62,933 bases of DNA, filler included, from Pelomyxa schiedti (GCA_020536535.1; 8 parts of 8 records of this genome joined end to end with filler, not necessarily neighbours in it); one strand, 5' to 3'. Shown: positions 3,834-9,542, numbered from the whole stretch's first letter. Numbers and translations are program-made. Notes: generated by a model not told the origin, from the letters alone.

Positions 3834-5120
3834 TCACAGGTAGAAGGAGAAAGGGTTTGTGACTGTGTGGCTGTGATCTAGCGATTTGGGATCACCGTCA
3901 CTGCTGATTGAGTGATGGAGAACTCCAACCGTGCAACCTGACTTGTAATCAGTGACTGTGACACAGCCATCCCGAATGTGGAAGAGGAGCCCAGAGTGAG
4001 CACTCACCAGCCAGCAGCAGTGACTGCAGTCAACAACACTCATTGCCTTTGTGGGGTTATTGCAGTCCCACACCTCCAGTGTGTTGGGTGAGAGTGTCAC
4101 GCAATACAGCCTCTCACTCATCTGTGAGAGTGTTTGGAACTGTCTTCCCTCTGTGTTGTATTCTGACATGTGAACCCTGTTTGGGCCAGATGCCTCTGTG
4201 AACTGAAAGATCACGGGGCCGCTGGAGGGAAGGAGGAGAGCAATGAAGGCACGCCCGCTTGACTCTGTCTTCAGAACAAGAACCATTGCAAGTGGGCACC
4301 ACAACAGCAGGTCATCATCGGGGAGCAAGTACTCAGCATAGAAGATTGGTGAGAAGGAGCCGGTGGACCAGACATGAGGCAGGTTGAAAATGCTCACTCT
4401 CAGTGTGGTTGTCTCGTCGAGGAAAACGACTTCATCTTCATTGCACTGGTTCATGGAACAGTTCCCACCTATCAGCCACTGGGAAGGTAATTGAATAAAT
4501 TTGGCTGTTGGAGGCTCTGCCAACAGGTTCGCAACACAAGCTTCCTCTTGGCAGAAGTCAACAGCAACTAGCCACTTATGGTTGACACATTCCGAACAAA
4601 AAGAGGACCACCTGGCAATCAGGTTGCCATCCCCGTTCACAGAACCATTCTCAGCCCTCCTGTACGAACAGAATTCGACCCGGTCACCAGACACAGGCCA
4701 CGTTCTGCGAATGGCGAAGATCTGATTTGCCCCAACCCATTTGTCGAGGGGGCCCCCTTCCACGTGGGCCTTTGATTGCCACCAGCCAGTGTGCTTGGTG
4801 ACTACGCCAAGGGTGTGCATTGACACTGCGAACGTGAACAACGCTGATGGGACATTGGAACTGGGACCTGACCACACACTCGCGCTGATGAACTTCACAC
4901 ACCCGCCACCGCCACCGCCACCGCCAGCGCCGCAGCATCCCACAATCCATTCCCACACAGTCCTCACGGCAAGCCACAAGTCAGCGCTGGTCGGAATGGT
5001 CGAACTGGAGATCCCAGAATTTCGGCGCAGGCACCCACAACGCGGGTGTGTTGTCATCAACAGGGCCAGAAACTGTGACACAAGAGTCGCAACAGGTGTG
5101 AACTTCGTGTTTGTGTCCAT
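3834..5120 (-). CDS. Single-exon lineage-specific protein with N-terminal QFLALL..HPRCG motif and beta-rich C-terminus
   Basis: ATG at 5120 inside the long ORF 3834-5762; MDTNTKFTPVATLVSQFLALLMTTHPRCG...; about 428 aa. Confidence 0.75.
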   Translation of the reverse strand: MDTNTKFTPVATLVSQFLALLMTTHPRCGCLRRNSGISSSTIPTSADLWLAVRTVWEWIVGCCGAGGGGGGGGCVKFISASVWSGPSSNVPSALFTFAVSMHTLGVVTKHTGWWQSKAHVEGGPLDKWVGANQIFAIRRTWPVSGDRVEFCSYRRAENGSVNGDGNLIARWSSFCSECVNHKWLVAVDFCQEEACVANLLAEPPTAKFIQLPSQWLIGGNCSMNQCNEDEVVFLDETTTLRVSIFNLPHVWSTGSFSPIFYAEYLLPDDDLLLWCPLAMVLVLKTESSGRAFIALLLPSSGPVIFQFTEASGPNRVHMSEYNTEGRQFQTLSQMSERLYCVTLSPNTLEVWDCNNPTKAMSVVDCSHCCWLVSAHSGLLFHIRDGCVTVTDYKSGCTVGVLHHSISSDGDPKSLDHSHTVTNPFSFYL

Positions 5121-5212
5121 GTAACTGCTTGATTTTAAAATATTAGTTTTTTCCCAAGTGATGCCCCCTTCCATTCGCATAAGACGCCGGAGGGAGAAAC
5201 GCCAAACAAACC

Positions 5213-6511
5213 ATGTCGCGTCAGGAAACTGAACCACAAGCCGCCCCGCAGGCACCCATAAGTCGCAACGTGTGGGCGGAAGGTTGCAACTTCGAAGGGG
5301 TGTCGGGCCACACGTTGCTATTCCACGACGCGCAACGGAACGAGCTATGGGACAAGAAGAAACTCGCCATAGCAAGAATCGTCGAGGCCGGCGAGAAGAA
5401 AGGAGACAACCCCGACGTACCAGGCGTGTCGTACTCGGCCATGATGCCAAACCCAGACAACATGCGGGCGTACACCGAAGACTGGCTGAGGAAGCAGACC
5501 GTCGACCGCCAGGCGCTGATGAGGGGCCCTTACCACTGCTCGTGGGGTGCCCCGTGCCGCCGCTGGCGCACCCGAAATCGGAGGCAGGCGTACCCGGATC
5601 TGCCCGAGGATATCCTCCCGGCGATCCCAAAGAAGGTCGACGCGGAACTGCTGGAGCAGGAGCAGAAGGCTCAGGGCGGCGAGGAGGAAGCACGCAGGAC
5701 GAGGGAAACGCTGCAGGGCGTGATGATGGGATTCGACATGAAGAGGCCGGCTGTGGCGTCAACTAGGAGCTACTCGTACACTTGTGAACCTGAATGCAGG
5801 AGGCCCTGCACCTCTGGGTTGCCTCCTCTCAATGTGTGTTATGTGTTGGTGAACAATATACTTATCATATATATATAGATAAATATATCTAGATATTAAT
5901 ATTATTAATATAATATAACGTTGTTGGCACAGGAGGAACAAATCCGGTGCGTGGAAAACATAATCAAGTGGTTCAGGCAGCGGAGGTGTATTTCGTGGGC
6001 AAGGGGACTCATGGCAGCCGGTTGCACCCGCACATTGGTTTCAACAGCTTGCAATCAAGCATGGTCCGAGTGGTATTCAGAGCCCGTCTGTGCCACGCTG
6101 AAGTCTACTCCAACATGGAAACTGATACAAAGTGCGATCCTCTTTCTTGATTGATTTTGGCTCACTCTCCCGGATTTAATAAAAAAAACCACAGGGTCAT
6201 GCAATTTCGTTGCCCAGAAATGTATCTCATTCCTGTGTGGTGCACACCCTCGTGCTGGGAAGAACAGCCCTCTTTCCATTCTTGGAGTTGACGTTTTGAG
6301 GCACATATTGATGCTATTTGGCCGATTCAGATTCAACTGCGACTTGGATGGCATGTTCAGAGAGCCACCGCCAACTGAATTTGAGAATGCCCTCAATACC
6401 TTTCGTCACCAGTGGCCTCCAGCAAGCAAACTTCCGATATGCGCATTTGGAAACTTTGACACAGAGCTGACCGAATCTCACATTGCACTGAACTCCTGTG
6501 CGTATGCGTGC

Positions 6512-6584
<73 letters not shown>

Positions 6585-7633
6585 ACTTATGCTTGCACCG
6601 ATACAAAGTGGTTTTTGCGTACACCCTTGTTTATGAATTCGGACCGTGGATATCCCTGGACGATTTTGTCTCCGCTGTTGGTTTGGCATCCTTTCCTTCT
6701 CCCAATTATTTATTCCTTTTTTTCAGAGGCCGGAAGTGTTGGAGACCTTCGGTGTTTCGCATTTCTGAGAGTTGGAGCCTACGCACGCACTCCTCAAGAG
6801 AGATTCATGGCAATCAGGCTTTATGAGACCTTGTTTGGTGTTCTTCCTGCATCTGAAGAGTCCAAGGTTTGCATCCCTTGCTTGCCGGCACGATGATTTA
6901 ATCTGTCACCCTTTGATAGTTTCACAAGTGTTTCACTGGTGATGGCTTTGTGCAGATGGCAGACAACTCTCTCAGGCAAGTGTATTATATTACATGCCGC
7001 ATATATATTTCCTAACATCTCTACAGGCGTGTGCGCGATGTCTGCGTTGGGGATTACGTGAAGACCGAATCGGGAATGAAAAGAATATGCCGGGTCGAGA
7101 GAAAGACCATCAATGACACAATTCCGATGTGTGAAGTCTCTGGCGTTTGGTTGACTCCCGGACATCCGGTTTTCGTGGTACTTTTCTTCACCTTCCATCA
7201 CAACCGAAGTCAAAAAAAAAAACCTCTCTCAAACACTCACAACTACAGGTGAAAGGGTGGCACTAATATGTTAACATAATTAATACAGGACGGAACATGG
7301 CAACACCCGTTTGAGATCACCACAGTGAGAACAGTGATTGTTGATGAACTGTTCAACTTTGAACTGTCAGGTGGCCCAATGTCACCTGACCACTCTGTGT
7401 TCATCAATGGTCTCCTGGTAAATGATTTCATTTATCATTTTATCTCTCTCCTCAACTTGCTATTCACCGCAAACCCACAACACACGCAGGTGTGCACGCT
7501 CGGGAAAGACTGTGGGAAGAGGATTGTGGGAGGGTGGCCAAAGGCTGACCAACTGGCTGGAACCGGTTATTGGAGAAACGGTTCTTCCTCTTGGTCTCGT
7601 TCCCTCGATTGGTTGCTGTTGACATCTGCCTAG
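5213..7633 (+). CDS. Multi-exon protein with HPRAG motif and C-terminal Vint-type Hint domain (paralog 2)
   Basis: Continuous spliced frame; Hint Cys1 at 6929 (K-CFTGDGFVQMADNS), TPGH block B, LFNFEL, HSVFINGLLVCTLGKDCG. Confidence 0.8.
6514..6581. repeat. (TA)n microsatellite in an intron
   Basis: About 33 TA units; source of the YIYIYI ORFs. Confidence 0.95.
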
Positions 7634-7811
7634 CTGGTGCTCTGCATGCATAATAGACAAGGTATAACATTCTTATGTCTTCAGGCGCTCATCAATTTGA
7701 TTTCAATAATAGACCATAAGTTTGTTGGGGCAGATTTTCGGATCTGGAAAATCGGGCCGCTGCAGTAACGATTGGGTGCAAAGAATGGCGAGTCACTACA
7801 TCGACAAACTT

Positions 7812-7897
7812 GTTAAGTCCTATTATCGAAAGATTCGGGGGTTCGAATCCTCCTGCTTTGGGCAACCTGAGCATGGCCGAGTGGTTAAGGCGGTAGA
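7812..7897 (+). tRNA. Candidate circularly permuted tRNA-Leu(UAA)-like gene (3' half 7812-7861, 5' half 7867-7897)
   Basis: TTAAGT-CCTAT, variable arm ATC-GAAA-GAT, T-arm GGGGG-TTCGAAT-CCTCC and acceptor strand TGCTTTG precede CTGAGCA-TGGCCGAGTGGTTAAGGC-G-GTAGA. Confidence 0.65.
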
Positions 7898-8014
7898 AAA
7901 GTATTTTGTGACTGCTGCATTCACCCTTCCTTGTTTTTTTCTCCCCCTTCACTTCAAACTACTCCCGACGAGTCCTCAACACGACTGAAGAACCAAATCT
8001 TTAATCTTTTGTTG

Positions 8015-9542
8015 ATGGGGTCAACGTCGTCGACGAAAAACGAAACGCACGCTCCTTCGGTCATTAAGGGCACAGGCACAGTTACACAACCGCCATTTGC
8101 AGAAGCCACCTCACGTAGCCATTATGCCAGAGACCCCAGTGCGCCGCGCAAGGGAATTGTGGGAGGTGGTTACAATGACAAGTGGTTGATGCACAAGTTC
8201 AACAGGGGGAGGGTGTTTGCTATTTTATGCAGCTGTGGATCCACGTGTGGGGCCGGGACCCCTCAGGGAATGAGGGATGTGATGTGCATGTCACATTTGC
8301 TCCGGCACATATTTTGGATGCTGGAAGCTCACTCGCCTTGGTCGCACGAGTATCTGGGAAGGCCAAAAGCGGCTGTGATGGTTTGGAGTTGGGTGAAAAA
8401 TACAATGAACGATGGCAGGTCACACATCATGGCTGTCACTAGGGCGAGGAACGACGACTGTCAGGAGGAGGAAGAAGGAGGGTGGAGGATTGTTGAACTT
8501 GTGAAAAGGCCAGGTGTGTTGCGTAATTATATTCCCTTTTTTTCGTTTCCTCCTGATCTTCCTGCAATAGCGACTCATTCAGGGTGGATGTTGACGATAG
8601 GTGATCCGCAGTCCCCATTGTGTGGGCTGTTTCCCTCTTCTTTTTACTCTCAATTAATGCTGTCCTACAGAACTTTATGGGCCAGATCAACAGAAAAACC
8701 TTATAACATAGTCAACCTTGAGAAGTTTCTTGTGAAATGCTTCCCACCAGGCTTCTTCGACATTACATCGTGGGCAAGTGTGACATACGCGGACCAGAAC
8801 ATTCCGTAACGGTTTCCCTCATATTTTCCTCAACCTGACCTATAAGATGTGAAGTGAAGGGGATGAAGTCTCTGTATGTTGCTTTGGCAAGAACGCAGCA
8901 ACACTTCTACGCTTCAACATTGCAAAACCAGTTGATGAGTCTTCTCCCACATTCACCAGAATGACGTGGAGACTGCCCAAAGAGGAAAAGCACACATTGA
9001 CTTCCCCGGGGTCATTCCTGGCTGCAGGACTTGTCCTTCCCCTGTGTTGCAGCAACACCGGTTACCTTTGCTTCATTGACACAACCACTGGGGAGAAGAT
9101 AGGGGAGATACCACACATCAACCCAACGTGCATTGCACCAGTCAGTGATAACCTGTTTGTCATCAGCTGCCTGGAATCCTTCAGCCTTATGAACCTCGAG
9201 CACTTGAGGGAAGGTCCCTTGTGGACCATCCATTCACCAGAAGTGGCTTCCCTCACATACCTTGATGGTCACATCCTCGTGGGTGAGGGTGAATTCTCTG
9301 GTGCCAAAGTGACAGTTTACACGAAGAAGGGGAACAAGGTCAAGACACTCACAAACCCTCCTGGTAAATGCATCATTGGCCACTTTGAAAACGAACGAAA
9401 ACACACTGGCAATTAACTGCCTAGTAATAATTTACACTAAAATCTTATAAACACCACAGCCCAAGGAATCCTCCAAGCAGCAAACAACAGGATCCAGCTA
9501 GTCACACACCACGACGATTACCAGAAAACTACGAAACAATAA
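8015..9542 (+). CDS. Lineage-specific multi-exon protein (MGSTSS start, degenerate HPRCG-type motif, beta-rich C-terminus)
   Basis: ORFs 7931-8809 and 8961-9416 joinable via GT-AG introns; last exon ends TAA at 9540-9542. Confidence 0.55.

Follow-up and report, generated by a model that had tools for sequence, protein, structure and literature searches.

The genome of Pelomyxa schiedti (Archamoebae, Amoebozoa) contains a real and expressed family of circularly permuted tRNA genes, the first for Amoebozoa. The member described here lies in a stretch of 62,933 nucleotides (parts of eight records of the assembly GCA_020536535.1 joined end to end, filler included), in the following called the window, in which positions 7812-7897 hold the 3′ part of a tRNA-Leu(UAA), a 5-nt spacer and then the matching 5′ part. 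On balance, we regard this locus, which carries the contig name C1289 in genome-wide comparisons, as a genuine and independently transcribed permuted tRNA-Leu(UAA) gene and as one of at least 21 dispersed permuted loci that coexist with clustered ordinary tRNA genes. Maturation of its product into a working tRNA is likely. This kind of gene is known as such; new are the host lineage, the number of loci, the redundancy with ordinary genes, the positions of the junctions and the missing bulge-helix-bulge (BHB) motif.

Structure of the permuted locus

A preliminary description had proposed a circularly permuted tRNA-Leu-like gene in an apparent amoebozoan nucleus. Its origin from the P. schiedti genome agrees with this proposal, and every element listed there was recovered base for base. 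An Hsp90 ORF on contig C197 of the assembly shares 99% identity with the heat shock protein 90 of P. schiedti, whereas Entamoeba proteins, its next named relatives, reach 71%. All features are located on the plus strand. The leader (7787-7811) consists of GGC-G-AGTCAC (7787-7796), the conserved block TACATCGA and ACTT (7808-7811). It is followed by the tRNA 3′ part (7812-7861), which comprises the anticodon-loop remnant GTTAAGT (7812-7818, corresponding to G32-U33-UAA-G37-U38), the anticodon-stem strand CCTAT (7819-7823), a class II variable arm T-ATC-GAAA-GAT-TC (7824-7836), the T arm GGGGG-TTCGAAT-CCTCC (7837-7853) and the acceptor 3′ strand TGCTTTG together with the discriminator G73 (7854-7861). 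The intervening sequence GCAAC (7862-7866) links the discriminator to position 1. The 5′ part (7867-7897) is composed of the acceptor 5′ strand CTGAGCA (7867-7873), U8, G9 and a Leu/Ser-type D arm GCCGAGTGGTTAAGGC (7874-7891), G26 (7892) and the anticodon-stem strand GTAGA (7893-7897). The trailer (7898-7933) contains AAGT (7899-7902), a T4 run (7904-7907), GTGACT-GCT (7908-7916) and the conserved GCATTCACCC, and it ends at a T7 run (7934-7940) which is likely the RNA polymerase III terminator. Upstream, the octamer CCATAAGT (7714-7721) precedes the conserved start of the leader by 65 nt and is tentatively considered as a promoter element.

The cross-pairing of the two halves given in the preliminary description was reproduced: six of the seven acceptor positions pair, including one G.U (G3.U70) and leaving U2.U71 mismatched, and four of five positions pair in the anticodon stem GTAGA/CCTAT, where A31.C39 is the mismatch. 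The pairing between the flanks likewise exists, with the ACTT of the leader being complementary to the AAGT of the trailer and AGTCAC to GTGACT. The 3′ part thus stands 5′ of the 5′ part on the same strand with a short linker at the acceptor end, and the locus forms a single transcription unit free of a terminator between the parts, with a T run downstream and one RNA across both.

In the native order, ARAGORN was silent on the locus, and so was Rfam at gathering thresholds; at E ≤10, the search of 7700-8000 against all families gave only two weak unrelated matches. This is expected for a permuted gene. After the parts had been reordered in a script, ARAGORN drew a complete 84-nt tRNA-Leu(UAA) cloverleaf which carries U8, G18G19, U33, G37, T54-T55-C56, A58 and the cognate anticodon, in line with the identity proposed earlier. 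However, ARAGORN tolerates almost any junction, so that the anticodon arm does not decide its call, which depends on the acceptor, D, variable and T arms. The purine at position 32 and the mismatches U2.U71 and A31.C39 in the reordered product are points against a working tRNA.

Assembly support and transcription

Over 7577-8341, the window is matched exactly by a 765-nt unitig present in each of two DNA runs from the source sample. In run X3, single-cell RNA-seq of another sample from the same study, a 158-nt contig with a depth of 43.7 is collinear on 7787-7927. It begins at the first conserved leader base (7787) and spans leader, 3′ part, spacer, 5′ part and trailer unbroken. Misassembly, named beforehand as a possible refutation, is therefore not supported, since independent DNA and RNA assemblies show the same order. 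The assembly was made from single cells after amplification (PMC8887013), permuted genes of this kind are otherwise known in algae, and permuted and canonical loci were never seen on one contig, which together could point to an amplification chimera, a misassembly or foreign eukaryotic DNA, for instance of an eaten alga. We consider such an artefact highly improbable: the order of the parts recurs in two DNA unitig sets and in the RNA of a different sample, the architecture is conserved among 21 loci with paralogues, and the neighbouring genes are spliced in Pelomyxa single-cell transcriptomes. Moreover, only one eukaryotic SSU rRNA gene was found (also PMC8887013), psbA was absent in a search of the genome, and the D arm of the permuted His genes (17/17) as well as the Leu D and variable arms are identical or nearly identical to those of canonical genes. 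The single SSU rRNA gene (C59:18787-23349; L096) is itself unusual, as very large insertions extend it to about 4.5 kb compared to 1.8 kb in the eukaryotic model.

Transcription of the locus is separate from that of its neighbours. In X3 the depth was 0 in the introns of the upstream gene and in the intergenic region 7939-8072, which makes DNA carry-over unlikely. In run X4 the upstream mRNA was present at a depth of about 30 and none was found on the element; the RNA of the element is thus separate from the upstream mRNA and not simply its 3′ UTR. Its depth is comparable to or above that of the neighbouring mRNAs. The T4 run noted earlier behind the 5′ half is indeed present, but it lies inside the trailer and is read through, as the X3 contig reaches 7927; the role of likely terminator passes to the T7 run.

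The upstream gene (6918-7659, plus strand) has GT..AG introns of 51-111 nt, with splicing confirmed by RNA contigs, and encodes a Vint/Hint domain (PF14623; 27 bits in one exon and 16 in the next, exons searched singly). A further intron (7660-7710) is located in its 3′ UTR, and its mRNA extends to 7796 or beyond and thus includes the beginning of the tRNA leader. On the other side, the downstream mRNA begins at 8101 (plus strand), some 160 nt past the T7 run, as shown by a template-switch oligo directly before this position in an RNA contig. At 3834-5762 on the minus strand, an orphan open frame of 642 aa without a Pfam domain was found, whose only database relative is its own record, hypothetical protein Pelo_17234. 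For a PIP5K fragment, a protein homology search gave no match.

The X3 contig differs from the genome at only two positions, 7846 A>T (A58) and 7892 G>T (G26). Reverse transcriptase is known to misincorporate at G9, G26, C32 and A58 where these are modified to m1G9, m2,2G26, m3C32 and m1A58 (PMC4697793), and the probability that two random differences in 141 nt hit such sites is about 1e-3. The two differences thus match the reverse-transcription signature of m1A58 and m2,2G26. Alternatively, they could be strain polymorphisms, as RNA and DNA runs come from different samples; other X3 contigs differ from the genome by 0.5-3%. The only RNA form seen in the contigs of the two RNA runs is the unprocessed linear one. 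No back-joined contig, as expected from a joined product, was among the assembled contigs of these runs, although contigs cannot show its absence.

The permuted gene family

The whole genome (52,367,397 bases in 5337 contigs) was scanned for a B box preceding an A box by 15-45 nt with the pattern GTTCRANNC-N15-45-TRGYNNANNGG, as suggested in the preliminary description. This resulted in 88 pattern matches. At 21 of them, on 18 contigs and including the window locus, the acceptor strands pair in the fixed tRNA register (seven positions after the T stem versus seven before U8), 19 loci with 7/7 and two with 6/7 pairs. By chance, about 0.1 such loci would be expected among 88 matches (0.375^7 each). 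The register of seven acceptor positions and the discriminator are retained at all 21 loci, and the spacers of the other permuted loci comprise 3-14 nt without a T run. About half of the permuted loci begin with C1, U1 or A1, paired to position 72, and not with the usual G1 (C167, C564, C583, C792, C823, C967, C1289 and others).

Flanks were read at seven of the 21 loci, representing six distinct genes and a second copy on C55. These loci reorder to Leu(UAA), Leu(CAG), His(GUG) and Arg(CCU) cloverleaves in ARAGORN, and cognate anticodon loops are kept in four of the six genes. All seven have a run of 5-14 T located 40-72 nt past the GG of the D loop, following the trailer, and the sequence between the halves is free of T runs throughout.

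A covariance model of the locus core (T arm, acceptor, D arm) detected four more loci genome-wide, on C967, C267, C817 and C823, which scored 42-54 bits with E values between 1e-9 and 2e-6 for the genome of 52 Mb. When four permuted class II cores were aligned by structure, 98.3% of the cells were paired and all seven acceptor pairs were changed on both sides, which was matched by 0 of 500 shuffles. These model matches together with the changes on both sides of the pairs indicate more than chance. The closest relatives are a paralogue found by DNA search at C967:14026-14161 and a third member on C267. The three share a common leader AATGGCGAGTCACTnCATCGA, which is near-identical in C967 and recognisable in C267, and a common trailer TGTGnCTGCTGCAnTCACCC, conserved in both. 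Their stems differ in sequence while the pairing is kept, i.e. the changes are compensatory. The acceptor stem reads CTGAGCA/TGCTTTG in C1289, CCGTCCA/TGGGCGG in C967 and GCCGCAG/CTGCGGC in C267; the T stem reads GGGGG/CCTCC, GGAGG/CCTCC and GTGGG/CCCAC, and the variable arm ATC-GAAA-GAT, ATC-TTCG-GAT and TTCC-TAT-GGAA, respectively. A usable anticodon loop is lacking in these two paralogues, the one of C967 being CAGAGGG with A33 and that of C267 being ill-defined. Leaders and trailers read at permuted loci other than these three Leu-type paralogues are unrelated.

The permuted tRNA-His(GUG) genes are present in two copies on C55 (2260 and 4458; L033/L034:1497-1549), 2.2 kb apart. In both, an encoded G-1 pairs with C73, giving an acceptor stem of 8 bp, whereas in the ordinary His genes of P. 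schiedti position 73 is A and G-1 is not encoded. A 7-nt direct repeat, ACTTCGC (positions 25-31), closes the leader as well as the 5′ part.

A metagenome scan for relatives returned mostly tandem Ser tRNA genes of bacteria and one true permuted locus. The latter, on contig Ga0208427_1028509 (L171:1323-1379), has a permuted class II core with 7/7 acceptor pairs and a 5-nt spacer, which scores 45 bits with model R1 and is unrelated.

Ordinary tRNA genes beside the permuted ones

A pattern anchored on TAAGGCG and the D-arm end detected at least 17 ordinary Leu(UAA) genes, having the anticodon arm GCTGA-TTTAAGC-TCAGC; the same D-arm-end pattern yielded eight ordinary Leu(CAG) genes. The genome is also rich in ordinary genes for His(GUG), Arg(CCU), Leu(AAG) and Ser, which stand in dense clusters. 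Clusters on C1662, C237 and C913 (L009, L010, L014, L015) reach 8 genes in 2.4 kb and 11 genes in 3 kb, partly as inverted copies, and many are situated on short contigs, reminiscent of Entamoeba with its tRNA arrays. One gene of 87 nt, called as tRNA-??? (gt), resembles an intron-bearing tRNA-Tyr(GUA). Within 1.5 kb of the permuted loci there was no ordinary tRNA gene, and no contig was seen that carries both kinds of loci.

Permuted and ordinary genes are, judged from their sequences, relatives within one genome. The variable arm of the window locus shares 12 of 13 bases with that of the ordinary Leu(UAA) genes, its D-arm stretch GAGTGGT(C)TAAGGCGGTAGA differs by a single base from the corresponding part of the canonical Leu(CAG) genes, and the unusual D arm of the His genes is identical at 17 of 17 positions. 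Anticodon loops match those of canonical genes with the same anticodon at 7/7 positions for Leu(CAG), 6/7 each for His and Arg and 5/7 for Leu(UAA). The anticodon, acceptor and T stems differ from these canonical genes, yet they still pair. Kept loops combined with stems that are changed but paired would be the pattern expected under purifying selection for decoding.

The ordinary genes rule out the permuted locus as sole source of tRNA-Leu(UAA), and it is not needed for decoding; the same redundancy applies to the permuted loci in general, with ordinary Leu, His(GUG) and Arg(CCU) genes being present. The observations that were to refute a permuted gene thus gave a mixed outcome: ordinary Leu(UAA) genes exist, but so do a transcript and 20 more permuted loci, and the order of the parts recurs in independent assemblies.

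Such redundancy is compatible with a decaying member of the permuted family which is still transcribed and modified and is no longer matured or used. C1289 has the weakest acceptor of the three paralogues (U2.U71 plus G3.U70) in addition to the A31.C39 mismatch and G32, the sister loci have degenerate anticodon loops, and the joined product was not seen in the contigs of the two RNA runs. Nevertheless, the locus has intact flanks and an intact D arm, T loop and variable arm, the loop core U33-UAA-G37 is retained, and the RNA reaches the depth of neighbouring mRNAs or more. The compensatory evolution within the family is also unexpected of neutral decay. In our estimation decay is therefore unlikely to describe this locus.

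Flanking helices and similarity to Y RNAs

The flanks of the window locus pair as an outer helix, AGUCAC/GUGACU plus GGC/GCU, in which C267 differs on both strands (GAUCAC/GUGAUU), and as an inner 4-bp helix ACUU/AAGU which adjoins the junction. By energy, the leader-trailer duplex of the window locus was not better than shuffled sequences (p 0.26); for individual loci, p values ranged from 0.08 to 0.35, and their combination gave about 0.02.

Paired ends are a feature of the bacterial YrlA Y RNAs (Chen et al. 2014; 10.1101/312249), in which a T arm, a closed acceptor-like stem and a D arm follow each other in the same order and the ends form an extended anticodon stem. YrlA RNAs are modified by tRNA enzymes and often have a long variable arm (10.1101/312249). 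The Pelomyxa locus exhibits this architecture, including a leader-trailer helix that covaries in C267. Its product might accordingly be a stable tRNA-like noncoding RNA whose acceptor is never opened and whose ends form a protein-binding stem, like YrlA RNAs binding Ro60. Both have the modules stem, variable arm, T arm, closed acceptor, D arm and stem in this order, and class II variable arms are found in many YrlA RNAs (10.1101/312249). Among the three paralogues, conservation is highest in leader and trailer, while the region of the anticodon loop is free to vary and U33 is absent in two of them. The RNA observed is the full linear form, at a depth above that of the neighbouring mRNAs, and the anticodon is already served by canonical genes. 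Furthermore, a multi-exon gene for a TROVE-domain (Ro60-like) protein is encoded at C807:26546-27809, not adjacent to the window locus.

To our knowledge, no Y RNAs are known for Amoebozoa. Even at E 10, no Rfam match to Y_RNA or YrlA was obtained for the locus, and three YrlA features are not found there, namely an adjoining Ro60 gene, an acceptor stem that varies in length and a conserved strand for Ro binding. All 21 loci have instead the 7-bp acceptor with a discriminator, a geometry relevant to RNase P, tRNase Z and synthetases and not to a closed mimic. Cognate anticodon loops persist in most of the genes with flanks read (four of six), and the unrelated flanks at the other permuted loci leave the family without a common protein-binding helix. 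A noncoding role of this kind thus appears improbable to us, and we return to the reading as a tRNA gene.

Junctions and possible route of maturation

As the anticodon resides on the 3′ part, the junction of the window locus falls at 31/32 (loop GUUAAGU) or 32/33 (loop AUUAAGU), consistent with the break near positions 31-33, and not at 37/38, that had been proposed earlier. The junction of Arg(CCU) is at 25/26 or 26/27 and that of Leu(CAG) within or just after the variable arm. For His(GUG) it may be anywhere from 24/25 to 31/32, because the repeat ACTTCGC ends both leader and 5′ part. By contrast, the junction types I-V published for permuted tRNA genes, including those of Cyanidioschyzon merolae, are 15/16, 20/21, 37/38, 50/51 and 59/60 (PMC3978253).

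A BHB restoring a canonical loop could not be fitted in the preliminary description. The exhaustive scan of six loci for the strict hBHBh' motif points in the same direction, giving chance-level matches of which none restores a canonical anticodon arm. One neat hBHBh' motif in C967 was rejected, as it would cut after G26 and thereby remove the anticodon-stem strand. Spliceosomal back-splicing, considered on account of TCTTTGCAG in the leader and GT in the trailer of C967, was rejected as well: the C1289 product would lose its anticodon and C267 is without the AG.

The genome encodes two catalytic domains of tRNA-intron endonuclease (PF01974, on C292 and C526) and one gene for the RNA ligase RtcB (C222). 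With these enzymes at hand, circularisation followed by cuts of RNase P and tRNase Z is the most economical model. RNA polymerase III would start near 7787, perhaps by means of an upstream element, and stop at the T7 run. Pairing of leader and trailer (AGUCAC/GUGACU and ACUU/AAGU) would then bring A31 or A32 beside G32 or U33. Both flanks would be cut off and the ends joined, probably by RtcB ligase, into a circle, so that the joined product would read GGTAGA(A) + (G)TTAAGTCCTAT. For the cutting step, a splicing endonuclease of broad specificity or another nuclease would be required, as a canonical bulge-helix-bulge motif does not explain cleavage. RNase P and tRNase Z would open the circle at the acceptor stem and excise GCAAC, and CCA would be added last.

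With regard to the upstream element, CCATAAGT also occurs 71 nt before the conserved leader of C967 (L002:1387) and upstream of the permuted His genes of C55 (L033:1353), at similar distances. About 14 distinct sites were counted in 274 kb of the genome, roughly twice the expectation, so that the octamer may act as a general promoter element; being fairly common, it is only a lead for the permuted loci. Extending the proposed route to the entire family, it is conceivable, albeit doubtful, that the at least 21 permuted genes constitute a second dispersed set which is matured by BHB-free end joining with junctions at about 26/27, 31/32 and in the variable arm, possibly under control of an external upstream promoter.

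Comparison with known permuted tRNA genes

The only hosts of permuted tRNA genes returned by our full-text literature search were Cyanidioschyzon, prasinophytes, Auxenochlorella, the Bigelowiella nucleomorph and Thermofilum, with none in Amoebozoa or Archamoebae; the preliminary description, too, knew of none in Amoebozoa. The genome paper of P. schiedti (52.4 Mb, 5337 scaffolds, seven amplified single cells) leaves tRNA unmentioned (PMC8887013).

The closest resemblance is to C. merolae (Soma et al. 2007; PMC3978253), in which the 3′ half is also located upstream on one strand with a short intervening sequence at the acceptor end, a terminator is absent between the halves, a T run follows downstream and CCA is not encoded. 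There, too, junctions occur at several positions of the cloverleaf and class II tRNAs including Leu(UAA) are permuted. Apart from the positions of the junctions, the Pelomyxa loci differ in being without a BHB motif and in belonging to a non-photosynthetic amoebozoan. Whereas the permuted genes of C. merolae complete its tRNA set, those of Pelomyxa duplicate anticodons of ordinary genes, and the RNA observed for the window locus is linear.

Type II genes (37/38) of Ostreococcus, Micromonas, Auxenochlorella and the Bigelowiella nucleomorph (Maruyama et al. 2010; PMC12636532) include Leu(UAA) and Ser, have spacers of 5-64 nt and are likewise missed by standard tRNA finders. Their junctions correspond to the canonical intron site, with an hBH motif cleavable by the ordinary eukaryotic endonuclease. 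In Pelomyxa, with the anticodon on the 3′ part, the break lies on the 5′ side of the loop, unlike in Type II. The permuted genes of Thermofilum pendens (Chan et al. 2011, PMC3218864) show the same order of parts with very short spacers (1-7 nt), but they are archaeal, only two in number, joined at 59/60 and furnished with BHB-type motifs.

Biological significance

So far, permuted tRNA genes have been viewed as an oddity of a few algae and one archaeon, and reviews to August 2026 debate whether they are relics of ancient origin or innovations of algae (PMC13578239). Their occurrence as a large amoebozoan family would mean that the arrangement arises or survives far beyond Archaeplastida. For the annotation of protist genomes, it follows that standard tRNA tools can miss dozens of genes. 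In addition, eukaryotes may join tRNA pieces at sites which the canonical splicing endonuclease is not known to cut, and BHB-free maturation, if true, would represent a new pathway of tRNA processing in a heterotrophic eukaryote. Since permuted and ordinary genes for the same anticodon coexist, Pelomyxa is a natural system in which the purpose of permutation can be addressed, with regulation, a different fate of the RNA and a neutral ratchet as candidates.
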